Of a DNA stretch of 64,000 nucleotides, positions 12,957-35,509 are shown in pieces. A program made the translations under genes and the position numbers. Positions within the stretch are counted from its first letter, which is position 1. Each line of letters starts with the position of its first letter. Source of the DNA: Pavona decussata (Eukaryota); assembly GCA_977016875.1 (NCBI GenBank), contig CDRNST010000090.1, positions 620,001 to 684,000 on the forward strand, written 5' to 3'. Below the pieces are notes generated by a model, which worked only from the letters and a program-made list of their open reading frames with translations, did not search any database and was not told the origin of the DNA.

Positions 12957-13781
12957 GAGTTTTCGATTCGCTGCATGTTCCCCACTAACGAGCACCATTT
13001 GATCGCATACAATTGTTAACTTTGAAAATTCGTAATTCTCTTGCCACGAATCCGAGAACGGTACTTTTTTCCATATTTAAAACTTTATTTATTGCAATTA
13101 CTCATAACTGCAAAGCAATGTAAATTTTATCGTTTCTTTCCCTCCAAAAATTGACACATGTTCAACTCTTGAAGATCCATAATTGCCTTTTTTACATCTC
13201 CTAGCCCGGTAGTTTTAGATATATTGAACAATTAATTCCTTTTAGTTTTCGATAACCAATATATGTAGATAGTAACGTTTCTGAAAAACTGAAAGCGTTT
13301 AGTTTCTTTTGCAAGCGTTTAGTTTCTTTTTTGTATCTGCACGGATCTAATTATGTTTGTCTGAGAATACGCGAGTAAATTGTTAGTGACAGAATCTATT
13401 CAAGCGCCATGTACAATCTCTAAAGTGCCTATGAAGTGAAACATTTTTTGTAGCAGATTGATAGTTAAGTAGTTTCTTTGTAAAACGTTCTCAAACCTAC
13501 TGGCTTGAAGTTAGCACAGTAAATTGTGAGCCTACATGACATATGTAAAAACGATCGTATTACAATGCAACATACACCAAAAAAAAACTAGAGAGCCGTT
13601 TGTATGGACAGTAATTAATTACTTTTCCTGATTTTGCTGCTCTCATGTAGAAAAGAAAGATTTCTAGCAGCAAAAAGCTGTTCGAACAAGTTAAATTCAA
13701 CACACCCATGCGCGAAATAGGAACGCATACATCACGCATGAAAGACATAACGCAGAGTGTGGAGTGTAGTACTTGTTAACG
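12957..13781. repeat. Diverged, internally deleted copy of the array unit (left edge)
   Basis: Begins AGAGTTTTCGATTCGCTGCATGTT like the array units, but with many substitutions and jumps near 13695 and 13775. Confidence 0.8.
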
Positions 13782-15095
13782 TTCGCTGCATGTTCACCAT
13801 AACGAGCACAATTTGATCGCATACAATTTTTAACTTTGAAAATTCATAATTTTATTGCCATGAATCCTAGAACGGTACTTTTTTTTATTTTTAAAACTTT
13901 GTTTATTGCAATTATTCATAACTGCAAAGTCCAAAAATTGCCACATGTTCAACTTTTGAAATCCATAGTTGAATTTTTAACAAATCCTAACACGGTAGTT
14001 TTAGATGTATTGAACAATTAATTCCTTTTAGTTTTCGATAACCGATATATGTAGATAGTCACATTTCTGAAAAACTGAAAGCAGTAAATTGTGAGCCTAC
14101 ATGACATGTAAAAACGATCGTATTACAATGCAACATACCCAAAAAAATACTAGAGAGCCGTTTGTATGGACAGTAATTAATTACTTTTCCTGATTTTGCT
14201 GCTCTCATGTGGAAAAGAAAGATTTCTAGCAGCAAAAAAACTGTTCGAACAAGTCAATTTTACAAACCTTTCAAGCTGTTTTCCCACTTGCATCCATCAG
14301 GATTAGGGATCTCCTTGCGCGATGCATGAATTCATGTAGGCAGAAATTACAACAGAAACAGTACAATTCAGTGCAATAAGGCCACCAAAAGGAATCGCAG
14401 ATAACATTGCACATCCAAACGGAATGTAGTAAAGCTGTGGGCAGAGCTTTTTTTTTTTGGAGGAATACCAACTTCACAAGCAAATGTGCAGAAATGATAT
14501 GCGATGCTTATCTCCCTCAGAAATGGTGCAATAATTCGTAAACAATCATCCTAGGCGTAACCTGTCTGAGTTCAAAGCTGGTTTGTACTGCACAGCGCAC
14601 CGATCCAGTATTGCTAGGATCTTGCTGGATGAGAACAAATTCTTTTCTTGTTTTTCTTGAAGACAATTATAATCTTCCATGCGTTCATCACATCCAGAAT
14701 TCCTCCGAGTCACAATAGTTTATTGTTCAAAGACCACCTGCCAATCAAAGTTGACTTCAACACACCCATGTGCGAAATAGGAACGCATACATCGCGCATG
14801 AAAGACATAACGCAGAGTGTGGAGTGTGGTACTTGAGTGCAGGAGAAAGACAAGCAATGTACGTAAGCTTAGTGGTAGCAAAATGAGCCAATTGGTATTT
14901 CGCAAATCTGTAAAGATTGTTGCAGGCCGGGAACACATGATTCTTGTTAACGTTTATTTAGAAAACAGAGAAAAGTTAAATGTAGTTTACCCGTAGCTTA
15001 ATGCGCAGTTGATAGACATATCTGCGGATTACAACGCGTTTAATATTGATGTTGACAAATGTTAACCATTTTCAGAACAATCGAAGAACTTGAAG

Positions 15096-15363
15096 ATGAT
15101 ATTTGTTGCAGCAGCACTATTTTTAGTGCTGCTGAAGCGGCTCATTGAAGAGCCAGAGAGACTCCCGATTCAAGAAGAGGGAGATGGAGAAGGGTGAGTC
15201 ATTTTGTAATTTTAAAAAATGTTGTTTACAATTTTTAATTGACATGACTGAGATACAGAAAAGAGATATACAAATTACTGAGATGAATTTTCTCTGCATC
15301 AATGACAGGGATCCAGCAGAGATCAACGCCGGAGCAGTAGAGCACGATGAGGATGCTCCCTGA
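15096..15363 (+). CDS. Candidate spliced 50-aa acidic micropeptide, copy 1 (MIFVAAALFLVLLKRLIEEPERLPIQEEGDGEGDPAEINAGAVEHDEDAP)
   Basis: Exons 15096-15193 and 15309-15363 join in frame across a phase-2 GTGAGT...ACAG intron of 115 nt. The frame is conserved in the diverged copy at 28009. Confidence 0.5.
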
Positions 15364-16775
15364 TAAGAGGGAGCATCGGTTGTAAATATACGTTTTTTTT
15401 ACTGAAAGGTAAGAGTGCAGAGTGCAAATTAGGAAACAAAGGCCAGAGTTTTCGATTCGCTGCATGTTCACCATAACGAGCACAATTTGATCGCATACAA
15501 TTTTTAACTTTGAAAATTCATAATTTTATTGCCATGAATCCTAGAACGGTACTTTTTTTTAGTTTTAAAACTTTGTTTATTGCAATTATTCATAACTGCA
15601 AAGTCCAAAAATTGCCACATGTTCAACTTTTGAAATCCATAGTTGAATTTTTAACAAATCCTAACACGGTAGTTTTAGATGTATTGAACAATTAATTCCT
15701 TTTAGTTTTCGATAACCGATATATGTAGATAGTCACATTTCTGAAAAACTGAAAGCAGTAAATTGTGAGCCTACATGACATGTAAAAACGATCGTATTAC
15801 AATGCAACATACCTCAAAAAATACTAGAGAGCCGTTTGTATGGACAGTAATTAATTACTTTTCCTGATTTTGCTGCTCTCATGTAGAAAAGAAAGATTTC
15901 TAGCAGCAAAAAGCTGTTCGAACAAGTCAATTTTACAAACCTTTTAAGCTGTTTTCCCACTTGCATCCATCAGGATCAGGGATCTTCCCCAGGGATCTCC
16001 TTGCGCGATGCATCAATAATGCAGAAATTACAACAGAAACAGTACAATTCAGTGCAATAAGGCCACCAAAAGGAATCGCAGATAACATTGCACATCCAAA
16101 CGGAATGTAGTAAAGGTGTGGGCAGAGCTTTTTTTTTTGGAGGAATACCAACTTCACAAGCAAATGTGCAGAAATGATATGCGATGCTTATCTCCCTCAG
16201 AAATGGTGCAATAATTCGTAAACAATCATCCTAGGCGTAACCTGTCTGAGTTCAAAGCTGGTTTGTACTGCACAGCGCACCGATCCAGTATTGCTAGGAT
16301 CTTGCTGGATGAGAACAAATTCTTTTCTTGTTTTTCTTGAAGACAATTATAATCTTCCATGCGTTCATCACATCCAGAATTCCTCCGAGTCACAATAGTT
16401 TATTGTTCAAAGACCACCTGCCAATCAAAGTTGACTTCAACACACCCATGTGCGAAATAGGAACGCATACAGCGCGCATGAAAGACATAACGCAGAGTGT
16501 GGAGTGTAGTACTTGAGTGCAGGAGAAAGACAAGCAATGTACGTAAGCTTAGTGGTAGCAAAATGAGCCAATTGGTATTTCGCAAATCTGTAAAGATTGT
16601 TGCAGGCCGGGAACACATGATTCTTGTTAACGTTTATTTAGAAAACAGAGAAAAGTTAAATGTAGTTTACCCGTAGCTTAATGCGCAGTTGATAGACATA
16701 TCTGCGGATTACAACGCGTTTAATATTGATGTTGACAAATGTTAAACATTTTCAGAACAATCGAAGAACTTGAAG

Positions 16776-17043
16776 ATGATATTTGTTGCAGCAGCACTAT
16801 TTTTAGTGCTGCTGAAGCGGCTCATTGAAGAGCCAGAGAGACTCCCGATTCAAGAAGAGGGAGATGGAGAAGGGTGAGTCATTTTGTAATTTTAAAAAAT
16901 GTTGTTTACAATTTTTAATTGACATGACTGAGATACAGAAAAGAGATATACAAATTACTGAGATGAATTTTCTCTGCATCAATGACAGGGATCCAGCAGA
17001 GATCAACGCCGGAGCAGTAGAGCACGATGAGGATGCTCCCTGA
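16776..17043 (+). CDS. Candidate micropeptide, copy 2
   Basis: Same exons and intron as copy 1. Confidence 0.5.
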
Positions 17044-18455
17044 TAAGAGGGAGCATCGGTTGTAAATATACGTTTTTTTTACTGAAAGGTAAGAGTGCAG
17101 AGTGCAAATTAGGAAACAAAGGCCAGAGTTTTCGATTCGCTGCATGTTCACCATAACGAGCACAATTTGATCGCATACAATTTTTAACTTTGAAAATTCA
17201 TAATTTTATTGCCATGAATCCTAGAACGGTACTTTTTTTTAGTTTTAAAACTTTGTTTATTGCAATTATTCATAACTGCAAAGTCCAAAAATTGCCACAT
17301 GTTCAACTTTTGAAATCCATAGTTGAATTTTTAACAAATCCTAACACGGTAGTTTTAGATGTATTGAACAATTAATTCCTTTTAGTTTTCGATAACCGAT
17401 ATATGTAGATAGTCACATTTCTGAAAAACTGAAAGCAGTAAATTGTGAGCCTACATGACATGTAAAAACGATCGTATTACAATGCAACATACCTCAAAAA
17501 ATACTAGAGAGCCGTTTGTATGGACAGTAATTAATTACTTTTCCTGATTTTGCTGCTCTCATGTAGAAAAGAAAGATTTCTAGCAGCAAAAAGCTGTTCG
17601 AACAAGTCAATTTTACAAACCTTTTAAGCTGTTTTCCCACTTGCATCCATCAGGATCAGGGATCTTCCCCAGGGATCTCCTTGCGCGATGCATCAATAAT
17701 GCAGAAATTACAACAGAAACAGTACAATTCAGTGCAATAAGGCCACCAAAAGGAATCGCAGATAACATTGCACATCCAAACGGAATGTAGTAAAGGTGTG
17801 GGCAGAGCTTTTTTTTTTGGAGGAATACCAACTTCACAAGCAAATGTGCAGAAATGATATGCGATGCTTATCTCCCTCAGAAATGGTGCAATAATTCGTA
17901 AACAATCATCCTAGGCGTAACCTGTCTGAGTTCAAAGCTGGTTTGTACTGCACAGCGCACCGATCCAGTATTGCTAGGATCTTGCTGGATGAGAACAAAT
18001 TCTTTTCTTGTTTTTCTTGAAGACAATTATAATCTTCCATGCGTTCATCACATCCAGAATTCCTCCGAGTCACAATAGTTTATTGTTCAAAGACCACCTG
18101 CCAATCAAAGTTGACTTCAACACACCCATGTGCGAAATAGGAACGCATACAGCGCGCATGAAAGACATAACGCAGAGTGTGGAGTGTAGTACTTGAGTGC
18201 AGGAGAAAGACAAGCAATGTACGTAAGCTTAGTGGTAGCAAAATGAGCCAATTGGTATTTCGCAAATCTGTAAAGATTGTTGCAGGCCGGGAACACATGA
18301 TTCTTGTTAACGTTTATTTAGAAAACAGAGAAAAGTTAAATGTAGTTTACCCGTAGCTTAATGCGCAGTTGATAGACATATCTGCGGATTACAACGCGTT
18401 TAATATTGATGTTGACAAATGTTAAACATTTTCAGAACAATCGAAGAACTTGAAG

Positions 18456-18723
18456 ATGATATTTGTTGCAGCAGCACTATTTTTAGTGCTGCTGAAGCGG
18501 CTCATTGAAGAGCCAGAGAGACTCCCGATTCAAGAAGAGGGAGATGGAGAAGGGTGAGTCATTTTGTAATTTTAAAAAATGTTGTTTACAATTTTTAATT
18601 GACATGACTGAGATACAGAAAAGAGATATACAAATTACTGAGATGAATTTTCTCTGCATCAATGACAGGGATCCAGCAGAGATCAACGCCGGAGCAGTAG
18701 AGCACGATGAGGATGCTCCCTGA
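18456..18723 (+). CDS. Candidate micropeptide, copy 3
   Basis: Same exons and intron as copy 1. Confidence 0.5.
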
Positions 18724-20139
18724 TAAGAGGGAGCATCGGTTGTAAATATACGTTTTTTTTACTGAAAGGTAAGAGTGCAGAGTGCAAATTAGGAAACAAA
18801 GGCCAGAGTTTTCGATTCGCTGCATGTTCACCATAACGAGCACAATTTGATCGCATACAATTTTTAACTTTGAAAATTCATAATTTTATTGCCATGAATC
18901 CTAGAACGGTACTTTTTTTTAGTTTTAAAACTTTGTTTATTGCAATTATTCATAACTGCAAAGTCCAAAAATTGCCACATGTTCAACTTTTGAAATCCAT
19001 AGTTGAATTTTTAACAAATCCTAACACGGTAGTTTTAGATGTATTGAACAATTAATTCCTTTTAGTTTTCGATAACCGATATATGTAGATAGTCACATTT
19101 CTGAAAAACTGAAAGCAGTAAATTGTGAGCCTACATGACATGTAAAAACGATCGTATTACAATGCAACATACCTCAAAAAATACTAGAGAGCCGTTTGTA
19201 TGGACAGTAATTAATTACTTTTCCTGATTTTGCTGCTCTCATGTAGAAAAGAAAGATTTCTAGCAGCAAAAAGCTGTTCGAACAAGTCAATTTTACAAAC
19301 CTTTTAAGCTGTTTTCCCACTTGCATCCATCAGGATCAGGGATCTTCCCCAGGGATCTCCTTGCGCGATGCATCAATTCATGTATGCAGAAATTACAACA
19401 GAAACAGTACAATTCGGTGCAATAAGGCGCCCAGAAAGAATCGCAGATAAAATTTCACATCCAAACGGAATGTAGTAAAGCTGTGGGCAGAGCTTTTTTT
19501 TTGGAGGAATACCAACTTGACAAGCAAATGTCCTGAAATGATATGCGATGCTTACCTCCCTCAGAAATGGTGCAACAATTTGTAAACAATCATCATAGGC
19601 GTAACCTGTATGAGTTCAAAGCTGGTTTGTACTGCACAGCGCACCGATCCGGTATTGCTAGGATCTTGCTAGATGAGAACAAATTCTTTTCTTGTTTTTC
19701 TTGAAGACAATTATAATCTTCCATGCGTTCATCACATCCAGAATTCCTCCGAGTCACAATAGTTTATTGTTCAAAAACCACCTGCCAATCAAAGTTGACT
19801 TCAACACACCCATGCGCGAAATAGGAACGCATACATCGCGCATGAAAGACATAATGCAGAGTGTGGAGTGTGGTACTTGAGTGCAGGAGAAAGACAAGCA
19901 ATGTACGTAAGCTTAGTGGTAGCAAAATGAGCCAATTGGTATTTCGCAAATCTGTAAAGATTGTTGCAGGCCGGGAACACATGATTCTTGTTAACGTTTA
20001 TTTAGAAAACAGAGAAAAGTTAAATGTAGTTTACCCGTAGCTTAATGCGTAGTTGATAGACATATCTGCGGATTACAACGCGTTTAATATTGATGTTGAC
20101 AAATGTTAAACATTTTCAGAACAATCGAAGAACTTGAAG

Positions 20140-20407
20140 ATGATATTTGTTGCAGCAGCACTATTTTTAGTGCTGCTGAAGCGGCTCATTGAAGAGCCAG
20201 AGAGACTCCCGATTCAAGAAGAGGGAGATGGAGAAGGGTGAGTCATTTTGTAATTTTAAAAAATGTTGTTTACAATTTTTAATTGACATGACTGAGATAC
20301 AGAAAAGAGATATACAAATTACTGAGATGAATTTTCTCTGCATCAATGACAGGGATCCAGCAGAGATCAACGCCGGAGCAGTAGAGCACGATGAGGATGC
20401 TCCCTGA
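20140..20407 (+). CDS. Candidate micropeptide, copy 4
   Basis: Same exons and intron as copy 1. Confidence 0.5.
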
Positions 20408-21819
20408 TAAGAGGGAGCATCGGTTGTAAATATACGTTTTTTTTACTGAAAGGTAAGAGTGCAGAGTGCAAATTAGGAAACAAAGGCCAGAGTTTTCGAT
20501 TCGCTGCATGTTCACCATAACGAGCACAATTTGATCGCATACAATTTTTAACTTTGAAAATTCATAATTTTATTGCCATGAATCCTAGAACGGTACTTTT
20601 TTTTAGTTTTAAAACTTTGTTTATTGCAATTATTCATAACTGCAAAGTCCAAAAATTGCCACATGTTCAACTTTTGAAATCCATAGTTGAATTTTTAACA
20701 AATCCTAACACGGTAGTTTTAGATGTATTGAACAATTAATTCCTTTTAGTTTTCGATAACCGATATATGTAGATAGTCACATTTCTGAAAAACTGAAAGC
20801 AGTAAATTGTGAGCCTACATGACATGTAAAAACGATCGTATTACAATGCAACATACCTCAAAAAATACTAGAGAGCCGTTTGTATGGACAGTAATTAATT
20901 ACTTTTCCTGATTTTGCTGCTCTCATGTAGAAAAGAAAGATTTCTAGCAGCAAAAAGCTGTTCGAACAAGTCAATTTTACAAACCTTTTAAGCTGTTTTC
21001 CCACTTGCATCCATCAGGATCAGGGATCTTCCCCAGGGATCTCCTTGCGCGATGCATCAATAATGCAGAAATTACAACAGAAACAGTACAATTCAGTGCA
21101 ATAAGGCCACCAAAAGGAATCGCAGATAACATTGCACATCCAAACGGAATGTAGTAAAGGTGTGGGCAGAGCTTTTTTTTTTGGAGGAATACCAACTTCA
21201 CAAGCAAATGTGCAGAAATGATATGCGATGCTTATCTCCCTCAGAAATGGTGCAATAATTCGTAAACAATCATCCTAGGCGTAACCTGTCTGAGTTCAAA
21301 GCTGGTTTGTACTGCACAGCGCACCGATCCAGTATTGCTAGGATCTTGCTGGATGAGAACAAATTCTTTTCTTGTTTTTCTTGAAGACAATTATAATCTT
21401 CCATGCGTTCATCACATCCAGAATTCCTCCGAGTCACAATAGTTTATTGTTCAAAGACCACCTGCCAATCAAAGTTGACTTCAACACACCCATGTGCGAA
21501 ATAGGAACGCATACAGCGCGCATGAAAGACATAACGCAGAGTGTGGAGTGTAGTACTTGAGTGCAGGAGAAAGACAAGCAATGTACGTAAGCTTAGTGGT
21601 AGCAAAATGAGCCAATTGGTATTTCGCAAATCTGTAAAGATTGTTGCAGGCCGGGAACACATGATTCTTGTTAACGTTTATTTAGAAAACAGAGAAAAGT
21701 TAAATGTAGTTTACCCGTAGCTTAATGCGCAGTTGATAGACATATCTGCGGATTACAACGCGTTTAATATTGATGTTGACAAATGTTAAACATTTTCAGA
21801 ACAATCGAAGAACTTGAAG

Positions 21820-22087
21820 ATGATATTTGTTGCAGCAGCACTATTTTTAGTGCTGCTGAAGCGGCTCATTGAAGAGCCAGAGAGACTCCCGATTCAAGAA
21901 GAGGGAGATGGAGAAGGGTGAGTCATTTTGTAATTTTAAAAAATGTTGTTTACAATTTTTAATTGACATGACTGAGATACAGAAAAGAGATATACAAATT
22001 ACTGAGATGAATTTTCTCTGCATCAATGACAGGGATCCAGCAGAGATCAACGCCGGAGCAGTAGAGCACGATGAGGATGCTCCCTGA
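21820..22087 (+). CDS. Candidate micropeptide, copy 5
   Basis: Same exons and intron as copy 1. Confidence 0.5.
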
Positions 22088-23499
22088 TAAGAGGGAGCAT
22101 CGGTTGTAAATATACGTTTTTTTTACTGAAAGGTAAGAGTGCAGAGTGCAAATTAGGAAACAAAGGCCAGAGTTTTCGATTCGCTGCATGTTCACCATAA
22201 CGAGCACAATTTGATCGCATACAATTTTTAACTTTGAAAATTCATAATTTTATTGCCATGAATCCTAGAACGGTACTTTTTTTTAGTTTTAAAACTTTGT
22301 TTATTGCAATTATTCATAACTGCAAAGTCCAAAAATTGCCACATGTTCAACTTTTGAAATCCATAGTTGAATTTTTAACAAATCCTAACACGGTAGTTTT
22401 AGATGTATTGAACAATTAATTCCTTTTAGTTTTCGATAACCGATATATGTAGATAGTCACATTTCTGAAAAACTGAAAGCAGTAAATTGTGAGCCTACAT
22501 GACATGTAAAAACGATCGTATTACAATGCAACATACCTCAAAAAATACTAGAGAGCCGTTTGTATGGACAGTAATTAATTACTTTTCCTGATTTTGCTGC
22601 TCTCATGTAGAAAAGAAAGATTTCTAGCAGCAAAAAGCTGTTCGAACAAGTCAATTTTACAAACCTTTTAAGCTGTTTTCCCACTTGCATCCATCAGGAT
22701 CAGGGATCTTCCCCAGGGATCTCCTTGCGCGATGCATCAATAATGCAGAAATTACAACAGAAACAGTACAATTCAGTGCAATAAGGCCACCAAAAGGAAT
22801 CGCAGATAACATTGCACATCCAAACGGAATGTAGTAAAGGTGTGGGCAGAGCTTTTTTTTTTGGAGGAATACCAACTTCACAAGCAAATGTGCAGAAATG
22901 ATATGCGATGCTTATCTCCCTCAGAAATGGTGCAATAATTCGTAAACAATCATCCTAGGCGTAACCTGTCTGAGTTCAAAGCTGGTTTGTACTGCACAGC
23001 GCACCGATCCAGTATTGCTAGGATCTTGCTGGATGAGAACAAATTCTTTTCTTGTTTTTCTTGAAGACAATTATAATCTTCCATGCGTTCATCACATCCA
23101 GAATTCCTCCGAGTCACAATAGTTTATTGTTCAAAGACCACCTGCCAATCAAAGTTGACTTCAACACACCCATGTGCGAAATAGGAACGCATACAGCGCG
23201 CATGAAAGACATAACGCAGAGTGTGGAGTGTAGTACTTGAGTGCAGGAGAAAGACAAGCAATGTACGTAAGCTTAGTGGTAGCAAAATGAGCCAATTGGT
23301 ATTTCGCAAATCTGTAAAGATTGTTGCAGGCCGGGAACACATGATTCTTGTTAACGTTTATTTAGAAAACAGAGAAAAGTTAAATGTAGTTTACCCGTAG
23401 CTTAATGCGCAGTTGATAGACATATCTGCGGATTACAACGCGTTTAATATTGATGTTGACAAATGTTAAACATTTTCAGAACAATCGAAGAACTTGAAG

Positions 23500-23767
23500 A
23501 TGATATTTGTTGCAGCAGCACTATTTTTAGTGCTGCTGAAGCGGCTCATTGAAGAGCCAGAGAGACTCCCGATTCAAGAAGAGGGAGATGGAGAAGGGTG
23601 AGTCATTTTGTAATTTTAAAAAATGTTGTTTACAATTTTTAATTGACATGACTGAGATACAGAAAAGAGATATACAAATTACTGAGATGAATTTTCTCTG
23701 CATCAATGACAGGGATCCAGCAGAGATCAACGCCGGAGCAGTAGAGCACGATGAGGATGCTCCCTGA
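23500..23767 (+). CDS. Candidate micropeptide, copy 6
   Basis: Same exons and intron as copy 1. Confidence 0.5.
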
Positions 23768-25183
23768 TAAGAGGGAGCATCGGTTGTAAATATACGTTTT
23801 TTTTACTGAAAGGTAAGAGTGCAGAGTGCAAATTAGGAAACAAAGGCCAGAGTTTTCGATTCGCTGCATGTTCACCATAACGAGCACAATTTGATCGCAT
23901 ACAATTTTTAACTTTGAAAATTCATAATTTTATTGCCATGAATCCTAGAACGGTACTTTTTTTTAGTTTTAAAACTTTGTTTATTGCAATTATTCATAAC
24001 TGCAAAGTCCAAAAATTGCCACATGTTCAACTTTTGAAATCCATAGTTGAATTTTTAACAAATCCTAACACGGTAGTTTTAGATGTATTGAACAATTAAT
24101 TCCTTTTAGTTTTCGATAACCGATATATGTAGATAGTCACATTTCTGAAAAACTGAAAGCAGTAAATTGTGAGCCTACATGACATGTAAAAACGATCGTA
24201 TTACAATGCAACATACCTCAAAAAATACTAGAGAGCCGTTTGTATGGACAGTAATTAATTACTTTTCCTGATTTTGCTGCTCTCATGTAGAAAAGAAAGA
24301 TTTCTAGCAGCAAAAAGCTGTTCGAACAAGTCAATTTTACAAACCTTTTAAGCTGTTTTCCCACTTGCATCCATCAGGATCAGGGATCTTCCCCAGGGAT
24401 CTCCTTGCGCGATGCATCAATTCATGTATGCAGAAATTACAACAGAAACAGTACAATTCGGTGCAATAAGGCGCCCAGAAAGAATCGCAGATAAAATTTC
24501 ACATCCAAACGGAATGTAGTAAAGCTGTGGGCAGAGCTTTTTTTTTGGAGGAATACCAACTTGACAAGCAAATGTCCTGAAATGATATGCGATGCTTACC
24601 TCCCTCAGAAATGGTGCAACAATTTGTAAACAATCATCATAGGCGTAACCTGTATGAGTTCAAAGCTGGTTTGTACTGCACAGCGCACCGATCCGGTATT
24701 GCTAGGATCTTGCTAGATGAGAACAAATTCTTTTCTTGTTTTTCTTGAAGACAATTATAATCTTCCATGCGTTCATCACATCCAGAATTCCTCCGAGTCA
24801 CAATAGTTTATTGTTCAAAAACCACCTGCCAATCAAAGTTGACTTCAACACACCCATGCGCGAAATAGGAACGCATACATCGCGCATGAAAGACATAATG
24901 CAGAGTGTGGAGTGTGGTACTTGAGTGCAGGAGAAAGACAAGCAATGTACGTAAGCTTAGTGGTAGCAAAATGAGCCAATTGGTATTTCGCAAATCTGTA
25001 AAGATTGTTGCAGGCCGGGAACACATGATTCTTGTTAACGTTTATTTAGAAAACAGAGAAAAGTTAAATGTAGTTTACCCGTAGCTTAATGCGTAGTTGA
25101 TAGACATATCTGCGGATTACAACGCGTTTAATATTGATGTTGACAAATGTTAAACATTTTCAGAACAATCGAAGAACTTGAAG

Positions 25184-25451
25184 ATGATATTTGTTGCAGC
25201 AGCACTATTTTTAGTGCTGCTGAAGCGGCTCATTGAAGAGCCAGAGAGACTCCCGATTCAAGAAGAGGGAGATGGAGAAGGGTGAGTCATTTTGTAATTT
25301 TAAAAAATGTTGTTTACAATTTTTAATTGACATGACTGAGATACAGAAAAGAGATATACAAATTACTGAGATGAATTTTCTCTGCATCAATGACAGGGAT
25401 CCAGCAGAGATCAACGCCGGAGCAGTAGAGCACGATGAGGATGCTCCCTGA
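25184..25451 (+). CDS. Candidate micropeptide, copy 7
   Basis: Same exons and intron as copy 1. Confidence 0.5.
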
Positions 25452-26856
25452 TAAGAGGGAGCATCGGTTGTAAATATACGTTTTTTTTACTGAAAGGTAA
25501 GAGTGCAGAGTGCAAATTAGGAAACAAAGGCCAGAGTTTTCGATTCGCTGCATGTTCACCATAACGAGCACAATTTGATCGCATACAATTTTTAACTTTG
25601 AAAATTCATAATTTTATTGCCATGAATCCTAGAACGGTACTTTTTTTTAGTTTTAAAACTTTGTTTATTGCAATTATTCATAACTGCAAAGTCCAAAAAT
25701 TGCCACATGTTCAACTTTTGAAATCCATAGTTGAATTTTTAACAAATCCTAACACGGTAGTTTTAGATGTATTGAACAATTAATTCCTTTTAGTTTTCGA
25801 TAACCGATATATGTAGATAGTCACATTTCTGAAAAACTGAAAGCAGTAAATTGTGAGCCTACATGACATGTAAAAACGATCGTATTACAATGCAACATAC
25901 CCCAAAAAATACTAGAGAGCCGTTTGTATGGACAGTAATTAATTACTTTTCCTGATTTTGCTGCTCTCATGTGGAAAAGAAAGATTTCTAGCAGCAAAAA
26001 AACTGTTCGAACAAGTCAATTTTACAAACCTTTCAAGCTGTTTTCCCACTTGCATCCATCAGGATTAGGGATCTCCTTGCGCGATGCATGAATTCATGTA
26101 GGCAGAAATTACAACAGAAACAGTACAATTCAGTGCAATAAGGCCACCAAAAGGAATCGCAGATAACATTGCACATCCAAACGGAATGTAGTAAAGCTGT
26201 GGGCAGAGCTTTTTTTTTTGGAGGAATACCAACTTCACAAGCAAATGTGCAGAAATGATTTGCGATGCTTATCTCCCTCAGAAATGGTGCAATAATTCGT
26301 AAACAATCATCCTAGGGGTAACCTGTATGAGTTCAAAGCTGGTTTGTACTGCACAGCGCACCGATCCAGTATTGCTAGGATCTTGCTGGATGAGAACAAA
26401 TTCTTTCCTTGTTTTTCTTGAAGACAATTATAATCTTCCATGCGTTCATCACATCCAGAATTCCTCCGAGTCACAATAGTTTATTGTTCAAAGACCACCT
26501 GCCAATCAAAGTTGACTTCAACACACCCATGTGCGAAATAGGAACGCATACATCGCGCATGAAAGACATAACGCAGAGTGTGGAGTGTGGTACTTGAGTG
26601 CAGGAGAAAGACAAGCAATGTACGTAAGCTTAGTGGTAGCAAAATGAGCCAATTGGTATTTCGCAAATCTGTAAAGATTGTTGCAGGCCGGGAACACATG
26701 ATTCTTGTTAACGTTTATTTAGAAAACAGAGAAAAGTTAAATGTAGTTTACCCGTAGCTTAATGCGCAGTTGATAGACATATCTGCGGATTACAACGCGT
26801 TTAATATTGATGTTGACAAATGTTAACCATTTTCAGAACAATCGAAGAACTTGAAG

Positions 26857-27124
26857 ATGATATTTGTTGCAGCAGCACTATTTTTAGTGCTGCTGAAGCG
26901 GCTCATTGAAGAGCCAGAGAGACTCCCGATTCAAGAAGAGGGAGATGGAGAAGGGTGAGTCATTTTGTAATTTTAAAAAATGTTGTTTACAATTTTTAAT
27001 TGACATGACTGAGATACAGAAAAGAGATATACAAATTACTGAGATGAATTTTCTCTGCATCAATGACAGGGATCCAGCAGAGATCAACGCCGGAGCAGTA
27101 GAGCACGATGAGGATGCTCCCTGA
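26857..27124 (+). CDS. Candidate micropeptide, copy 8
   Basis: Same exons and intron as copy 1. Confidence 0.5.
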
Positions 27125-28008
27125 TAAGAGGGAGCATCGGTTGTAAATATACGTTTTTTTTACTGAAAGGTAAGAGTGCAGAGTGCAAATTAGGAAACAA
27201 AGGCCAGAGTTTTCGATTCGCTGCATGTTCACCATAACGAGCACAATTTGATCGCATACAATTTTTAACTTTGAAAATTCATAATTTTATTGCCATGAAT
27301 CCTAGAACGGTACTTTTTTTTAGTTTTAAAACTTTGTTTATTGCAATTATTCATAACTGCAAAGTCCAAAAATTGCCACATGTTCAACTTTTGAAATCCA
27401 TAGTTGAATTTTTAACAAATCCTAACACGGTAGTTTTAGATGTATTGAACAATTAATTCCTTTTAGTTTTCGATAACCGATATATGTAGATAGTCACATT
27501 TCTGAAAAACTGAAAGCAGTAAATTGTGAGCCTACATGACATGTAAAAACGATCGTATTACAATGCAACATACCCCAAAAAATACTAGAGAGCCGTTCAT
27601 ATCCAGAATTCCTCCGAGTCACAATAGTTTATTGTTCAAAGACCACCTGCCAATCAAAGCTGACTTCAACACACCCATGCGCGAAATAGGAACGCATAAA
27701 TCGCGCATAAAGCTGAGTAAGCTGAGTGTGGTCCGTAACAGAGAGCTTTGAGCAGAGCCAAGGAAAGACAAGAAATGTACGTAAGCTTAGTGGTAGCGAA
27801 ATGAGCCAATTGGTATTTCGCAAATCTGTAAAGATTGTTGCAGCCCGGGAGCACATGATTCTGGTTAACGTTTATTTAGAAAACAGAGAAAAGTTAAATT
27901 TAGTTTACCTGTAGCTTAATGCGCAGTTGATGGACATATCTGCGGATTACAACGAGTTTAATATTGATGTTGACAAATGTTAAACATTTTCAGACCAATC
28001 GAATCAAG

Positions 28009-28248
28009 ATGATTAAGCAGCGGCTTATTCAAGAGAGCCGAAGACTCCCGATTCAAGAGGTGGGAGATACGGGGTGAGTCATTTTGTAATTTTCAAAAAT
28101 GTTGTTTACAATTTTTAATTGACATGACTGATATACAGAAAAGAGATATACAATTAGTGAAATGAATTTTCTCTGCATAAATGACAGAGATCAAGCAGAG
28201 AGAGATAGAGAACCCAGAGAAGCAGTAGAACATGCGGATGCTCCCTGA
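28009..28248 (+). CDS. Diverged 41-aa micropeptide paralogue lacking the hydrophobic stretch (MIKQRLIQESRRLPIQEVGDTGDQAERDREPREAVEHADAP)
   Basis: Exons 28009-28073 and 28188-28248, with the same phase-2 intron and the same stop. Net length changes in each exon are multiples of 3. Confidence 0.45.
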
Positions 28249-28590
28249 TTGGAGGGAGCATCATTTGTAAATATACGTTTTTTTAAAAGGTAAGAGTGCA
28301 GAGTGCAAATTAGGAAACAAAGGCCAGGTTAGTCTGTTCACATTACCCCTATTATTCCGTGGGATTCTCGAACGGTACGCAATCTCCGCAATCTTGGTTT
28401 GTAAAATCGAGCTCAATCTGTGGAGGTTCTTTAAACTACAGAATTAGAAGGGTGCGGGAGTGTGGTATAGTGAGGGAGGGAAAGCAAAAACATAGGGGAT
28501 CTGAAGCGATGACAGTACGAATTACGTATCTTTCACCGCAAGTTCTAAAAGTGGATACGGCTGGCGTATAATGTTGTGAAGATAGTGGGG

Positions 28591-28825
28591 TGTTGGAAAC
28601 GAGTAGGGACTGGAACTAGTCAAATTCGCACGTGATCATTTTGTATCAGATTTCTCGGATAGATTCTTGTTTTGAATGTGACTCTCGAAGGAACTCTGGA
28701 ACTATTACTTCTAAATGTAGCGGAATTTATCTTGTACGTCGTAAATAGCGGAATTCTTTCTCAAGGAATGTTATCATGTAATCTTCGAGTTTATCAAGTA
28801 TTAAAGAGTTTGGTCGAATACAACA
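28591..28825 (+). repeat. 5' LTR (235 bp)
   Basis: TGTTGGAAACGAG...GAATACAACA; identical by eye to 34415-34649. Confidence 0.97.
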
Positions 28826-28828
28826 TTT

Positions 28829-28847
28829 TGGTGCCGGAGACCCGGGA
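28829..28847 (+). other. Primer binding site, most like the complement of the tRNA-Phe 3' end
   Basis: TGGTGCCGGAGACCCGGGA lies 3 nt after the LTR. The canonical tRNA-Phe PBS is TGGTGCCGAAACCCGGGA. Confidence 0.7.
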
Positions 28848-28890
28848 GTGAAAGCAAGGAGAACAGAGCGCGTGTTTTGTAACCTTCGCC

Positions 28891-31800
28891 ATGTCGGATG
28901 TCAAAAAGAAAATTCTGGAGCGCTCAGGGTTCAGAGTTCACGTTCGTAAAGTTATGAACGATGTGAAGGAGTTAATCAACAACGGTGATGTGGAAAGCGT
29001 CCGACTGAAGCTGAAATCGCAAAAGATTAACCTGGAAAAACATCAGAAGGAAATTGCATCGCTTGATCAAGAAATCGCAGAATTATTACAAGCCGACGCA
29101 ATCGAAAAGGAAATCCTGGAGCGCTGCGATTTTAATGCGTCGTTACAAGAAACGATCTTATTGATAACCTCATGTTTGTCGTCTCCTAAGCAGGAAGCGA
29201 ATGATGTCGAAGAAACGGTGACATTGCCATCGGCGAGTCCGCAAGGATCTTTCCCTGCTCAAAATGGCGCGAAGGGCAAAAACAAGGCAAAGCTACCGAA
29301 GCTCACGTTACCTAAGTTTACCGGGGATGCCACAAAATGGACAACATTTTGGGACAGCTTCTCATCTGCAATTCACACGAGTGAGGATCTGAATGAAGTC
29401 GACAAATTTCAGTATTTGAAATCATTATTGGAGGGCGCTGCAGCCGAAACCATTTCTGGTTTACCTCTCACAAGCTCAAATTACAACCATGCGGTCGATC
29501 TCCTAAACAAGCGGTTCGGAAGCAAACAAGTTATCATATCTAAACACATCGAGATGTTAATGCAGCTACCAAAAGTGAGTGATACTGGTGATCTTAAACA
29601 ACTGCGGCAATTGTTGGACAAAACAGAGTCGGCTGTTCGAAGTTTGCAAGGAATTGGAATTTCCATTGACACGTACGGAACATTCCTAACCCCAGTAATC
29701 ATGGCGAAAATTCCTCAAGAGTTGCGTTTGATTTTGAGTCGTGGTATGAGCGACGAGTGGGACCTCGACACATTAATAAAGTCGTTTGCAGAGGAGTTAC
29801 AGATACGAGAAAGGTGTGCTCTCGGTCCAGTGACAGATCAGTCGAAAATGAGGGAAAAGCGAGAGTTTGGATATGAATTACGGTTCGGTCAAAACAAGAG
29901 ACCCCCCACGTCGTCGACACTTGTTTCATACAACGACAGACCTCAACAAAATAAGGAAATGTGGTGTACTTTCTGCAGTGGACCGCACCCTTCGGCGAGA
30001 TGCGCTGTTGTTACGGAGCCAGAAGCGAAGAAAAGAATTCTCCGCCAAAAGGGGCGATGTTTTGGTTGTTTGAGGAGTGGTCATGTGAGCCGAGATTGCC
30101 AAGCGAGATGTTATCGTTGTGGCGGGAAACATCATGTATCGCTATGCGGCGTGCAAAACTCTTCACCACAATTCACGCAGGCAAGAAGAACCAATCAGGA
30201 ACAAACTGTGAGTACAAATTTGTATTTCACCCAAGATGTTAAGAATAATTCTGTTTTGCTGCAAACTGCCAGAGCCAGGGTTGGAAATCCTAATGGAGGA
30301 AATTCTTGCCATGTCAGGGTTTTATTTGATTCATGTTCTCAAAGGTCTTACATAAGTACACGGTTGAGGAGCAAGTTAGGCCTGCCCTCATTTGGAAGTG
30401 AAACTGTTCTGATTAAAACGTTTGGAAACAATGAAGCCTCGTTGAAGAAATGTGACATTGTTCAATTTGCACTGGAATGCCAAGATCAGTTGAAAGTGTT
30501 TGTCAATGCTTATGAAGTTGAACTGATTTGTGGACCCATAGCCAACCAGGCCATTGAGATTGCACAGCAAAATTACCCTCATCTACAAGGCTTACCCCTT
30601 GCTGACTATTCCCGTGGCGATGAAGATCTTGAAGTAGATATTATGATTGGTGCTGATTATTACTGGTCCATTGTCCAGAACCATGTGGTACGGGGGGAGT
30701 CGCATGGACCTGTAGCAGTTCGTACAAGGCTGGGTTATGTTTTGAGTGGTCCTATTAACATAGCAGGTGCATTGCAGAGCTCATCAAGTGTTAACATGTC
30801 GCATGTTATGAAGACAGAGTGTCAAGTAGTTGAAGAAGACTTAAAGTCAGTTGATGTCTCTCTGAAAGAAGAACTGAACAAATTCTGGGACTATGATACT
30901 CTGGGAGTGAAGAATAGAGAAGAAGAATTCTATGAAGATTATCTTGCCAAAGTAAAGTTCAGTGGTAGCCGTTATGAAGTTTCTCTTCCCTTTAAGGAAG
31001 AACATCCTACAATTCCAGACAACTACTTGGTAGCACAGAAACGCCGCAGCTCCTCATTAGCAAGATTGAAGTCCAAGCCTGACATTCTACAACAGTATGA
31101 TGATGTCATTAAGGACCAACTGAACTCTGGTGTTATAGAATTAGTTGACAAGAGTCGTGTTCAAGAAGTAATACCAGGAACTGTGCATTACATTCCTCAT
31201 AAGGAAGTCGTGAAGGAAGACAGAACCACTACCAAACTACGAGTAGTGTATGATGCTAGTGCTAAATCTCAGAATGAACCAACTCTGAATGACTTTCTGC
31301 TCCCTGGTCCAGCCTTAACACCATTGATCTTTGACATTCTCCTACGATTTCGTCTCCACAGAGTTGCATTGATTGGTGACTTGGAGAAAGCGTTTTTAAA
31401 TGTTGAAGTAAATCCTGAACAGAGGAATTTGTTAAGGTTCTTGTGGATAAGTGACATCAGTTCCTCGAATCCGAAAGTCATTATCCTTAGATTCACACGG
31501 CTTGTGTTTGGCCTTGTCTGTTCACCGTTCATTTTGAATGTAACCCTGAGAAATCACTTAAGCAAGTATGAGAACATTGATCCAGACTTTGTGAACACTG
31601 TTGTCAGAGCTTTGTATGTGGATGACTTTGCATCTGGAAAGGATTCGGTAAAGGACTGCTTCGAACTTTACGGAAAATTGAAGTTGCGATTCAGAGAAGG
31701 AGGTTTCAACATGCGAAAATGGGCATCGAACAGCGAAGAGCTAAATCAGTTGATTGAGAAGGAGGAAGCTAACCTGTCATCATCAACTCAGACACCTTCA

Positions 31801-34320
31801 GAAACCAGTCCTTCTTTGACAAAGTCTAGTGTTCTCGAAGAAGACCTCATCAAAGTGATGGGAGTTCCATGGGATAGGATAGAAGACAGCTTCAAGTTTG
31901 ATCTCGCAACCTTTGCTACACAAGCATTGGATGGAACACTGACAAAGCGGAAACTGTTGAGCATCACTGCTCGATTTTATGATCCATTAGGCTTGTTGTC
32001 ACCAATTATGTTGCCCTTGAAGTGTATGTTTCAAGAGATATATCAGCTCAAGATTGGCTGGGATGAGGCCCTGCCAGAAGAGCCCTGTTTAAAGTGGAAA
32101 GAAGTAGCAGAAGACATGTTGAGAGTTTCAGTGGTCAGTGTACCTCGCTGTGTCCTAGCTGGGATAGAAGCAGAAGATGTCAAGTCTATTCAACTGCACG
32201 GTTTTGCAGACGCGAGTAAGATTGCTTATGGTGCAAACATCTATGTTCGGGTGACAACCTCTAATGTCAGCTATTCGCAGCTGTTAGCCTCTAAAACTAG
32301 GGTAGCACCCTTGAAGGGAGAGACAATTCCTAGATTGGAATTGATGGCAGCATTGACTCTAGCAAACCTGATGACAGCTGTGTACAAGGCATTGGCTTGT
32401 ACCGTCAAGGTTGATTCTGTGTTCAATTGGATTGATTCTCAGATTGTATGGTGGTGGATTCATGGAGAGTCAAAACAATTCAAGCAGTTTGTGCAGAATC
32501 GAGTAACAAAGATTCGAAGTCTCTGGAGTAAAGAACATTGGGGATATTGCCCTTCTGAACTTAACCCAAGTGACATTGCCTCGCGAGGAACTAAGAGTTC
32601 CGATCTTGTTTCCAATGATCTATGGTGGAAAGGAGCACCATTTCTAGAGAAGGAGAAGGATCAATGGCCAAGCCCACCTAATTGTCCTGTTGATGAAGGC
32701 ACCCTCTCAGAAGAAACTACAAAGAAATTGAAGAAAGAAGATGCAGATGGAATCTCACAAGTAATGACCGTATTGGTCCAAGCCTCTGAAAACATCTCTG
32801 AAGTTGTCCAACCAGAGAGATTTAGCAGTCTCAGCAAGCTTATTAGAGTAACTGCCCTTGTATTGAAGTTCATCAGACGGATTAAAAGAGTTCCAGAAAT
32901 GCATTCAAATGTTAGTTCACAGGAAATGAATGCTGCAAAAATTCTCTGGTACAAAGACGTTCAAGGGAAACTTGATGAAAGGGAGAGATCAAGTTCGACT
33001 TGGGAACAGTTAGGAGTCTTTAAAGATGAAGATGGAGTATTGCGATGCAAGGGAAGGATTCAGAATTCCTCACTTCCATACTCAGCCAAGTTTCCAATCC
33101 TGTTACCGAGAAAGCAGCACTTCACAAGATTAGTAATTGCACAAAGTCATGAAAACGTGAAACACAATGGGGTTGGAGAAACTCTCACTGAAACTCGGTC
33201 ACAGTTCTGGATAATCAAAGGACGACAAGCTGTCAAGGATGTACTCTCTAAGTGCATTACATGTAAGAAGATACAAGGGAGAGCTTTCAGTAGCCCACCT
33301 CCTCCTCCATTACCTTCATTTCGAGTCTCAGATGATCTGGCCTTCTCCAAAGTTGGTGTAGACTTTGCTGGCCCCCTTTATGTTAAGAATATCTACCAGT
33401 CCAAGGGAGACATGTTCAAGTGTTACATTGCTCTATTTACATGTGCAAGTACCAGAGCTATGCACCTTGAACTCACACCCGATTTGACCGCCAAGTCATT
33501 TCTAAGAGTGCTTAAACGTTTCTTTGGAAGACGAGGGATACCCAACCTGTTCATCTCAGATAACGGGAAAACTTTCAAAGATTCAGAAGTTCAGAAGTTC
33601 GTTCTTAACAAGAACATTGACTGGAATTTCAATGTGCCCACTGCGAGCTGGTGGGGCGGGTTTTTCGAAATCTGCGTCAAACTTGTGAAAAGGTGTCTGA
33701 AGAAAGTACTGGGAAATGCAAAGCTTAGTTATGAAGAATTGGAATCAGCCCTGATTGAAACTGAAGGAGTGTTAAATTCCAGGCCATTAACCTATGTGTA
33801 CAATGAGTTGTCAGAAGCTCCACTAACACCTTCTCATCTCGTAATTGGTCGACGTCTCTTGGAGCAACCTTCTGCTACCAGTGTACCTCTGAGCACTCTA
33901 GCCCGACGGGAACGATATTTGGAGAGTCTCCTCACCCACTTCAGAAATCGTTGGAGGAAAGAATACCTGACTGGCATCAGAGAGTATCAGAAACTTAAGG
34001 GAGAACCGAGAAGAACCATTCAAATTGGTGACCTTGTGCACATATATGCAGACAAAACACCTAGACAGCAGTGGAGAATGGGGAAAGTAGAGAAGCTGTT
34101 GCGAGGAAGAGACAACGTTGTTCGCTCCGCTGAAGTGGCGACAGTAGACAAATCTCTACGCAGGATTTGCATCAAGCGTCCAATTCAGAAGCTCTATCCT
34201 CTTGAAGTTAATGTGTTTGATGAAGGAGCAGCTGAGATGGGAGCTGTCCAGTATGACAGAGCAAGGAACATTTGTGTAGTCAGAGATGAAGATATTCCAA
34301 TTGTTGTTACTGCATCTTAA
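28891..34320 (+). CDS. BEL/Pao gag-pol polyprotein, 1809 aa (DUF1759 gag, 3 Zn knuckles, aspartic protease, RT, Pao RNase H, integrase, DUF5641-like tail)
   Basis: Motifs: LPKFTGDATKWTTFWDSF; CTFCSGPH..C, CFGCLRSGHVSRDC, CYRCGGKHHVSLC; LFDSCSQRSYI; KLRVVYDAS, DLEKAF, LYVDD; LHGFADAS, TIPRLEL; GVDFAGP, SDNG, WWGGFFE; RPIQKLYPLE. Confidence 0.96.
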   Translation: MSDVKKKILERSGFRVHVRKVMNDVKELINNGDVESVRLKLKSQKINLEKHQKEIASLDQEIAELLQADAIEKEILERCDFNASLQETILLITSCLSSPKQEANDVEETVTLPSASPQGSFPAQNGAKGKNKAKLPKLTLPKFTGDATKWTTFWDSFSSAIHTSEDLNEVDKFQYLKSLLEGAAAETISGLPLTSSNYNHAVDLLNKRFGSKQVIISKHIEMLMQLPKVSDTGDLKQLRQLLDKTESAVRSLQGIGISIDTYGTFLTPVIMAKIPQELRLILSRGMSDEWDLDTLIKSFAEELQIRERCALGPVTDQSKMREKREFGYELRFGQNKRPPTSSTLVSYNDRPQQNKEMWCTFCSGPHPSARCAVVTEPEAKKRILRQKGRCFGCLRSGHVSRDCQARCYRCGGKHHVSLCGVQNSSPQFTQARRTNQEQTVSTNLYFTQDVKNNSVLLQTARARVGNPNGGNSCHVRVLFDSCSQRSYISTRLRSKLGLPSFGSETVLIKTFGNNEASLKKCDIVQFALECQDQLKVFVNAYEVELICGPIANQAIEIAQQNYPHLQGLPLADYSRGDEDLEVDIMIGADYYWSIVQNHVVRGESHGPVAVRTRLGYVLSGPINIAGALQSSSSVNMSHVMKTECQVVEEDLKSVDVSLKEELNKFWDYDTLGVKNREEEFYEDYLAKVKFSGSRYEVSLPFKEEHPTIPDNYLVAQKRRSSSLARLKSKPDILQQYDDVIKDQLNSGVIELVDKSRVQEVIPGTVHYIPHKEVVKEDRTTTKLRVVYDASAKSQNEPTLNDFLLPGPALTPLIFDILLRFRLHRVALIGDLEKAFLNVEVNPEQRNLLRFLWISDISSSNPKVIILRFTRLVFGLVCSPFILNVTLRNHLSKYENIDPDFVNTVVRALYVDDFASGKDSVKDCFELYGKLKLRFREGGFNMRKWASNSEELNQLIEKEEANLSSSTQTPSETSPSLTKSSVLEEDLIKVMGVPWDRIEDSFKFDLATFATQALDGTLTKRKLLSITARFYDPLGLLSPIMLPLKCMFQEIYQLKIGWDEALPEEPCLKWKEVAEDMLRVSVVSVPRCVLAGIEAEDVKSIQLHGFADASKIAYGANIYVRVTTSNVSYSQLLASKTRVAPLKGETIPRLELMAALTLANLMTAVYKALACTVKVDSVFNWIDSQIVWWWIHGESKQFKQFVQNRVTKIRSLWSKEHWGYCPSELNPSDIASRGTKSSDLVSNDLWWKGAPFLEKEKDQWPSPPNCPVDEGTLSEETTKKLKKEDADGISQVMTVLVQASENISEVVQPERFSSLSKLIRVTALVLKFIRRIKRVPEMHSNVSSQEMNAAKILWYKDVQGKLDERERSSSTWEQLGVFKDEDGVLRCKGRIQNSSLPYSAKFPILLPRKQHFTRLVIAQSHENVKHNGVGETLTETRSQFWIIKGRQAVKDVLSKCITCKKIQGRAFSSPPPPPLPSFRVSDDLAFSKVGVDFAGPLYVKNIYQSKGDMFKCYIALFTCASTRAMHLELTPDLTAKSFLRVLKRFFGRRGIPNLFISDNGKTFKDSEVQKFVLNKNIDWNFNVPTASWWGGFFEICVKLVKRCLKKVLGNAKLSYEELESALIETEGVLNSRPLTYVYNELSEAPLTPSHLVIGRRLLEQPSATSVPLSTLARRERYLESLLTHFRNRWRKEYLTGIREYQKLKGEPRRTIQIGDLVHIYADKTPRQQWRMGKVEKLLRGRDNVVRSAEVATVDKSLRRICIKRPIQKLYPLEVNVFDEGAAEMGAVQYDRARNICVVRDEDIPIVVTAS

Positions 34321-34403
34321 CTTTCAGATCTAAAACTTTGAACATTGGACTGAGTTTCAAGAGTTATCTTTACAGTCTCGCCTTATGATTGACTCCGTCA
34401 ATC

Positions 34404-34412
34404 AGGGGGGAG
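34404..34412 (+). other. Polypurine tract
   Basis: AGGGGGGAG lies 2 nt upstream of the 3' LTR. Confidence 0.8.
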
Positions 34413-34414
34413 TG

Positions 34415-34649
34415 TGTTGGAAACGAGTAGGGACTGGAACTAGTCAAATTCGCACGTGATCATTTTGTATCAGATTTCTCGGATAGATTCTTGTTTTGAA
34501 TGTGACTCTCGAAGGAACTCTGGAACTATTACTTCTAAATGTAGCGGAATTTATCTTGTACGTCGTAAATAGCGGAATTCTTTCTCAAGGAATGTTATCA
34601 TGTAATCTTCGAGTTTATCAAGTATTAAAGAGTTTGGTCGAATACAACA
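34415..34649 (+). repeat. 3' LTR (235 bp)
   Basis: Matches the 5' LTR and is followed by the TSD TGGGG. Confidence 0.97.
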
Positions 34650-35414: not shown

Positions 35415-35509
35415 ATGTTCTTTTTTGTTGCGGCATTAATTTTCCTGATGATAAAGGAGATGGTCACCGGTGAAACGCTGCAAATCCCCATCCAAGAAAC
35501 AGGTCCGAT
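35415..35509 (+). other. Distant paralogue of the micropeptide first coding exon (MFFFVAALIFLMIKEMVTGETLQIPIQETGP)
   Basis: Shares the upstream acceptor TGTTGACAAATGTTAACCATTTTCAG, the FVAA and PIQE motifs and a phase-2 GTGAGT donor with the array exon. Confidence 0.55.

Follow-up and report, generated by a model that had tools for sequence, protein, structure and literature searches.

Does each 1.68-kb unit of a tandem array in the coral Pavona decussata carry a small spliced gene that open reading frame (ORF) calling overlooks, and is it the encoded peptide that evolution has preserved? The array lies within a stretch of 64,000 nt (contig CDRNST010000090.1, positions 620,001 to 684,000, assembly GCA_977016875.1), hereafter referred to as the window; positions given without a contig handle are window positions. 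A sequence-only reading of the window had proposed that every unit encodes a two-exon micropeptide with a hydrophobic N-terminus and an acidic tail. It is very likely, on the strength of in-frame insertions and deletions (indels), codon-position bias and a deep paralogue, that a real spliced small coding sequence is present and that it belongs to a tandem, lineage-restricted family. Judged from sequence, it is also probable that this family specifies small proteins in which an N-terminal targeting segment precedes an acidic tail that evolves fast, one member having been amplified to eight copies very recently.

The window contains no N and its G+C content is 39%. Exact-string searches of the window with four landmarks of the gene (the contexts of the ATG-exon start, donor, acceptor and stop) located each of them at eight places, successive sets being spaced by 1680, 1680, 1684, 1680, 1680, 1684 and 1673 nt. 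The stop context was found at a ninth place as well. These searches and a reading of unit 1, which is used as a reference below, bore out the two-exon anatomy that had been proposed (Table 1). The gene is missing from the six-frame ORF list because its unspliced frame ends immediately, at a TGA inside the GTGAGT donor; the ORF track is indeed blind to it, as had been claimed.

Paralogues were collected by DNA and profile searches of the 602-Mb genome of the same coral. The family comprises 16 type-1 members and additional type-2 members. In each lineage exon 1 starts with a conserved ATG, ends at a donor that reads GTGAGT (GCGAGT in one copy) and is 98, 65, 104, 104, 116, 104 and 104 nt long, or 95 nt in type 2, in every case 2 modulo 3. 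Exon 2, counted to the conserved stop, is 55, 61, 34, 52 and 52 nt long, or 49 nt in type 2, in every case 1 modulo 3. The ATG, the GT (GC in one copy), the AG and the stop are conserved throughout, and no in-frame stop was found in any copy. In a MAFFT alignment, which takes no account of codons, all eight gap runs within the coding sequence (30, 12, 6, 6, 3, 30, 9 and 3 nt) were multiples of three, compared to 4 of 16 gap runs outside it, where lengths of 1, 2, 4, 5, 10, 16, 19 and 20 nt occur. The chance expectation for eight in-frame gaps is (1/3)^8 = 1.5e-4, and the hypergeometric P is approximately 7e-4. Intron indels measure 1 and 4 nt, and the stretch between the TTTTCAG acceptor and the ATG is 20, 15, 30, 14, 11, 10 or 0 nt long, i.e. 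out of phase. Therefore, the frame opens at the ATG and skips the intron. Two other ways of reading the unit were rejected on these grounds: a 72-residue ORF that reads through the intron is disrupted in paralogues by the 1- and 4-nt indels, and a longer protein with a start upstream of the ATG is incompatible with the out-of-phase acceptor-to-ATG distances.

Substitutions follow the same frame. The minimum numbers of changes at first, second and third codon positions were 24, 24 and 43 (P = 0.019). Nei-Gojobori ratios of non-synonymous to synonymous differences (pN/pS), calculated separately for each exon and excluding the split codon, ranged from 0.26 to 0.85 and were below 1 in 21 of 21 pairs; with only 20-35 synonymous sites these values are noisy but one-sided. 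Of the checks suggested by the sequence-only reading, those of the frame and of the substitution ratio came out in its favor among these paralogues.

Type-2 paralogues provide a deeper comparison. Although type-1 and type-2 DNA is barely alignable, the intact type-2 gene L048 has in common with type 1 the 13 hydrophobic residues, a basic residue, P-I-Q-E-x-G, a phase-2 intron, A-V-E-H and a stop. The L048 stop falls within sequence that in the array type is 3′ untranslated region (UTR). In this comparison, conservation of frame and motifs extends over a much longer time than in comparisons within type 1. A 24-nt motif just upstream of the coding exon is unchanged between the two types, while the sequence around it is unalignable, and occurs exactly at 17 places in the 602-Mb genome, compared to one for the reversed control. 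The motif contains two yUnAy branch-like sites, a pyrimidine run and AG, and may be either a 3′ splice site or a core cis-element. A metagenome scan with the 24-nt motif returned no matches. A type-2 copy is also present in the window, where homology ends 9 nt into the intron and exon 2 is lost. Downstream of it, a 75-residue ORF at 35735-35962 (+) belongs to no Pfam family, its sole relative being a 99-residue protein, 97% identical, from an ENA assembly (P0004). This ORF was rejected as a continuation of the type-2 exon because the two differ in frame and because it belongs to no family and has a single near-identical relative.

Table 1. Location of the gene, of its paralogues and of associated features (window positions unless a contig handle is given)
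Feature	Position	Strand	Description
Coding exon 1, unit 1	15096-15193	+	98 nt; ATG start; ends in phase 2
Exon 1 in the other units	16776, 18456, 20140, 21820, 23500, 25184, 26857	+	located by exact-string search
Intron, unit 1	15194-15308	+	115 nt; GTGAGT...ACAG; phase 2; pyrimidine run before ACAG
Coding exon 2, unit 1	15309-15363	+	55 nt including TGA; acidic tail; conserved A-V-E-H near end
24-nt motif	15052-15075	+	just 5′ of the coding exon; ends in TTTTCAG
Possible 5′-UTR intron	14863-15074	+	GTAAGC donor to TTTTCAG acceptor; putative
Donor-like GTAAGAGTGCA	15409-15419	+	45 nt past the stop; may begin a 3′-UTR intron
Palindrome 1	15109-15134	+	perfect; 11-bp stem, 4-nt loop; encodes core of hydrophobic segment
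Palindrome 2	15352-15377	+	9-bp stem, 8-nt loop; around stop codon; absent from type-2 genes
Tandem array	12956-28330	+	self-BLAST, repeat families
Ninth copy	28009-28248	+	exon 1 28009-28073 (65 nt), intron, exon 2 28188-28248 (61 nt)
Type-2 paralogue in window	35391-35518	+	24-nt motif; ATG at 35415; 95-nt exon 1 (phase 2); GTGAGT donor
Intact type-2 gene L048	motif C144:592805; G000:C144:592829		95-nt exon, intron with homology islands, 49-nt exon 2 and stop
Third type-2 site	C144:276312		
Type-1 paralogues	C144:742k, C323:420k		86-87% identical
Type-1 pair	C90:839-840k		two copies, 987 nt apart
Type-1 paralogue	C90:804k		~80% identical
Truncated type-1 copies	C47:2150k, C144:34k		two copies ending 23 nt into the intron
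Gene fragment	C144:384k		
Pao/BEL LTR retroelement	28571-34656	+	Peptidase_A17, DUF1759, RVT_1, rve, DUF5641; separate from the gene

The predicted product has 45-55 residues. Exon 1 encodes 13 hydrophobic residues followed by K-R and then by an acidic stretch with the conserved P-I-Q-E-x-G; the acidic tail as a whole spans approximately 35 residues and is a mixture of E, D, G, P and A. Kyte-Doolittle values of the hydrophobic segment average 3.15 (type 1) and 3.03 (type 2), and its length is conserved and lies within the 7-15 residues of a signal-peptide h-region. The K-R pair, to which the earlier reading had drawn attention as a dibasic site, turned out not to be conserved: it is present in the array and in the C90:839k copies, with KT, QR or KE at this position in other paralogues. 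The C-terminus reads D-A-P or H-P-L, with no Gly-basic amidation signal. A prohormone or neuropeptide precursor is therefore not supported, there being neither a conserved dibasic site nor a C-terminal Gly amidation signal.

Two palindromes overlap the coding sequence, and with them comes an alternative according to which there is no gene: the ORF would be a chance frame in repeated DNA, and the conserved elements would be the palindromes, the 24-nt motif and a non-coding transcript. The best-conserved "coding" parts of type-1 copies do coincide with the two perfect palindromes, and intron and flanks are better conserved than exons. The palindromes also account for weak matches of exon 1 to miRNA models on both strands, with E values around 0.3 (0.27-0.39 when the SNORD27 matches described below are included) and scores far below gathering scores. 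However, pairing in palindrome 1 is complete (11/11) only in most type-1 copies; it falls to 9-10/11 in three copies without compensation and to 5/11 in type 2, and despite these unpaired substitutions the encoded residues remain hydrophobic, type 2 included. Type 2 has neither palindrome and still has the peptide features. Since, in addition, every coding indel is a multiple of three, third-position changes are in excess and no Rfam family is found at threshold, we consider the absence of a gene improbable. What is conserved appears, from these comparisons, to be the peptide and not the structure.

Divergence among the paralogues is focused on the exons. When four full-length lineages are compared, variable columns number 36 of 95 in coding sequence (38%), 79 of 526 in non-coding sequence (15%) and 9 of 115 in the intron (8%); Fisher tests of coding against non-coding and against intron columns give 1e-6 and 1.6e-7, respectively. 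Exon divergence is 3-7 times that of intron and flanks, and paralogue pairs differ at only 3-6 positions per 115 nt of intron. A dN/dS above 1 in the mature region was not found, pN/pS being below 1 in every pair.

Degenerate partial units (12956-13775) open the array; full 1.68-kb units follow from 13782, and near 28330 it closes with a last unit that is truncated, together with the diverged ninth copy of the gene. Self-BLAST showed that units 1, 2, 4 and 5 are 100% identical across 1680 nt. A variant of 98.2% identity is common to units 3 and 6, and a third, hybrid one is found in unit 7, the higher-order arrangement being A A B A A B C. All 56 variable columns fall at unit positions 719-1651, and none in the gene or in the next 450 nt; the variable patch looks like one repeated conversion or ancestry patch. 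Since whole units are identical, the array must be extremely young or strongly homogenized, and for the same reason the identity of the eight gene copies is no evidence of selection or constraint. The statement that all eight copies are identical, with variation mostly in the other half of the unit, therefore holds as an observation and fails as an argument for constraint.

The same eight-unit array is present in two ENA assemblies, without a mismatch over 14.7-20 kb. It is thus not an artefact of one assembly, though the samples may share a genotype. A contig of ERZ25073805 (L054) departs from the window sequence right after copy 9, at window position 28313, then runs for 237 nt in B-type unit sequence, identical to window 19148-19384, before it ends; this alternative junction reflects either structural variation in the array or a contig-end tangle. 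Just past the array, at 28326-28371, summed depth was very high (approximately 490 in run X14), with many short contigs in all four runs and unrelated sequence on either side; this stretch is a high-copy repeat common across species. Contigs of another species (run X17) contain head-to-tail unit joints with other periods. The tandem arrangement is not, as these contigs indicate, unique to this genome, and the family seems to gain copies in tandem habitually.

The ninth copy had been singled out as a diverged one that keeps its coding anatomy. It does retain the ATG, GTGAGT, phase 2, AG, frame and stop. A deletion of 33 nt in exon 1 has, however, removed the hydrophobic N-terminus, and copy 9 is therefore not an intact family member. 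Its exon-2 type is that of the second copy at C90:839k (C90:839k-b) and its exon-1 type differs, so that exon types are shuffled.

Additional donors at approximately 14863 and 15409 had been read as signs of UTR exons. Their presence was confirmed, and both are conserved in type 2: the GTAAGC donor and the TTTTCAG acceptor are kept in the type-2 paralogue with a spacing of 51 nt instead of 212 nt, and the donor at 15409 is retained in copy 9, L009, L010 and type-2 L048. Their role in UTR exons is conjectural; as far as the sequence goes, the conserved donors are compatible with UTR introns and a more distant poly(A) site. An Rfam search in E-value mode, covering positions 12000-30000, gave no match in the intron. 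An intronic snoRNA or miRNA host was rejected, no Rfam family being found at threshold, and tRNA genes inside the unit were rejected as well. Weak matches to the SNORD27 model at 19497-19569 and 24541-24613 (+) reached 28 bits (gathering score 52, E = 0.39); they are confined to the two B-variant units, lie outside the gene and are most likely due to chance.

In the reading that we favor, each unit would be a two-exon gene, possibly a four-exon gene with UTR exons, which is transcribed and spliced to yield a protein of 45-55 residues. Its 13-residue hydrophobic segment would most likely act as either a signal peptide or a short signal anchor that targets the product to the endoplasmic reticulum membrane, and would be followed by the strongly acidic, fast-evolving tail. 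The family would expand through segmental and tandem duplication, with one member amplified very recently to eight identical copies. Each copy has its own upstream motif, and dosage may rise if the copies are transcribed.

A number of observations weigh against this reading, and sequencing runs and protein databases supply some of them. Runs were searched with one whole unit; run kinds ("RNA?") are guesses, and no run with unit sequence is on record as RNA. The runs with unit sequence were DNA-like and came from this species and relatives, diverged copies being present in sister species (organisms B, E and F). X14, the only "RNA?" run with unit words, gave no exon contig and no splice joint (3301 letters) and is probably a restriction-site-associated DNA (RAD)-like library, while seven other "RNA?" runs of the species, also of guessed kind, contained next to no unit words. 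Contigs from X16, X17 and X5 are DNA-like and cross the exon-intron border unspliced; an Illumina adapter follows a GATC site at one loose end, so these are probably restriction-based (RAD-type) DNA libraries. Protein searches, conducted exon by exon, gave no match among predicted proteins from transcripts or other species, apart from an unspliced ORF call on the allele of one paralogue. Among 1.84 billion proteins the exon-1 peptide profile hit only this 54-residue call, whose contig matches the C144:742k locus at 99.4% identity, and P0002, a spurious protein with acidic repeats. Pfam gave no match at E <= 10 and ESM Atlas no usable match. In a word search the 43-residue unspliced ORF of L011 yielded no candidate and P0001 only itself, and an exact look-up of a 33-residue unspliced ORF found nothing on record.

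The remaining points come from the genes themselves. Neither AATAAA nor ATTAAA occurs anywhere in the 1.68-kb unit. The hydrophobic segment has no charged n-region, and in the array copies it is followed by K-R-L-I-E-E-P, with no small residues at -1/-3, which makes signal-peptide cleavage doubtful; a V-T-G site occurs in type 2 only and an L-F-A site in L009/L010 only. Truncation affects several members, namely copy 9, C47, C144:34k and the window's type-2 copy. Finally, synonymous divergence among paralogues is 0.1-0.7, far above the 0.03-0.05 of the intron, and plain positive selection on the protein is therefore insufficient to explain the exon-focused change. Local hypermutation, exon-limited conversion between old allelic types or alignment noise in a short indel-rich region may account for it.

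Several of these points would also be expected if the family was once coding, or still is elsewhere, and the 1.68-kb unit expanded in satellite-like fashion within a segmental duplication, leaving eight silent array copies as a by-product unrelated to dosage. The RNA-labelled runs listed above without unit words, the lack of a poly(A) signal in the unit and the plain truncation of several other members fit such an origin, as do the identity of entire units, a variable patch that resembles a conversion tract and a region rich in transposons and duplications. On the other hand, every array copy has an intact ORF, splice signals and the 24-nt motif. Tandem pairs at C90:839-840k and in the other species' contigs (X17) suggest that tandem gain is a habit of the family, and the silence of runs whose RNA labels are guesses weighs little. 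We therefore regard silent array copies as rather unlikely, while giving this explanation more weight than the absence of a gene.

The surroundings of the array raise another possibility, namely that a mobile element carries the ORF as a passenger or accessory gene. The gene sits within an approximately 9-kb block, represented in the window by 6766-13691, one unit, 28330-28571 and 34656-35354. At least five loci carry further copies of it with 85-97% identity (C144:742k, C144:384k, C323:420k, C47:2150k and C144:34k); in these copies the gene is deleted in one case and truncated in two. A transposon remnant at 3641-4369 (+), with a CxC5 cysteine cluster as in KDZ-type transposases, lies beside the block, and the ORF could have spread with the block. 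Against this, three blocks share their outer flanks and no terminal repeats or target duplications were seen at block ends, and the blocks are therefore read as segmental duplications, not as a transposon. Family members also exist outside any block (C90:804k, C90:839k and the type-2 genes), and neutral decay of a transposon would not focus change in exons. A Helitron-like or terminal-inverted-repeat (TIR) element as the carrier was rejected, as block ends show no such features. Spread as mobile-element cargo thus seems improbable, and we retain the reading of a small-protein family that expands by segmental and tandem duplication.

Other elements were also noted in the window. The Pao/BEL long terminal repeat (LTR) retroelement is 6.1 kb long and has an uninterrupted gag-pol ORF of 1809 residues at 28891-34320 (+); it is missing at three paralogous loci and so is probably a young insertion. 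A further transposon remnant, at 1016-2188 (-), consists of two ORFs with an rva_4 integrase core. ORFs of 346, 1089, 133 and 245 residues at 47996-54986 (+) resemble one large, partly broken element or gene.

Comparison with described systems suggests that, as an orphan family of small peptides arrayed in tandem, this is something of a familiar kind, and that the family itself is probably new. Sea-urchin Sp185/333 (Transformer) genes have two exons, one of them a leader exon, form tight clusters and diversify via blocks of in-frame indels and recombination between paralogues; they encode far larger proteins, with documented expression in immune cells. In its mosaic of exon-1 and exon-2 types the array family looks similar to them, without homology. 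Venom- and defence-peptide genes in tandem arrays, such as conotoxin superfamilies and ant myrmicitoxin genes, are small genes of 2-3 exons with a conserved hydrophobic N-terminus and a fast-evolving remainder, features that have counterparts here. In toxin-peptide families introns are conserved within a family (PMC3862624), and such genes lie in tandem repeats, with a GC-AG intron in one paralogue and, in some genes, an intron just past the stop codon (PMC10800049). Variable exons alongside conserved introns are known from these families (PMC3862624, PMC10800049). All of these traits are matched in the array family, which, in contrast to toxin genes, has no cysteine framework, no cationic or amphipathic mature peptide and no sequence similarity to them, and has a strongly acidic tail and elevated synonymous divergence. 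Small cysteine-rich proteins (SCRiPs) of reef corals are taxonomically restricted and transcript-defined (PMC2652719). They share with the array family small size, lineage restriction, multiple copies, an N-terminal hydrophobic leader and a coral host; unlike them, the array copies have no cysteines and are known here from the genome alone, and no homology was detected. A link with biomineralization, suggested earlier from the acidity of the product, found no support, since the sequences resemble neither the known acidic proteins of corals nor any Pfam family. Acid-rich and skeletal matrix proteins of corals have hundreds of residues with long Asp/Glu runs and were identified in skeleton (PMC3748352, PMC6824150). 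The array product is likewise net acidic with a presumed secretory leader, but its tail is only approximately 35 residues long and of mixed composition, and gave no profile or family match.

A bolder proposal, which we put forward tentatively and consider doubtful, is that these are coral-specific acidic peptides of approximately 50 residues, membrane-targeted or secreted, whose exons diversify at synonymous and non-synonymous sites, by in-frame indels and by shuffling of exon types amid near-identical surroundings, one allele having been amplified eightfold very recently. If true, this would be an effector-like system (in defence, symbiont handling or allorecognition) that evolves like toxin or immune genes, and a cysteine-free acidic product of such a system would be unprecedented.

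Should the array copies be silent, they would illustrate that a frame-preserving history of paralogues does not make each amplified copy functional. The exon-focused divergence amid near-identical flanks makes this a compact locus for the question of how such diversification arises, whether by selection, local hypermutation or exon-limited conversion. If expressed, the genes would constitute an unannotated lineage-restricted family wholly missed by standard ORF finders and protein databases, and would offer a clean example of a coral gene whose copy number rose very recently.

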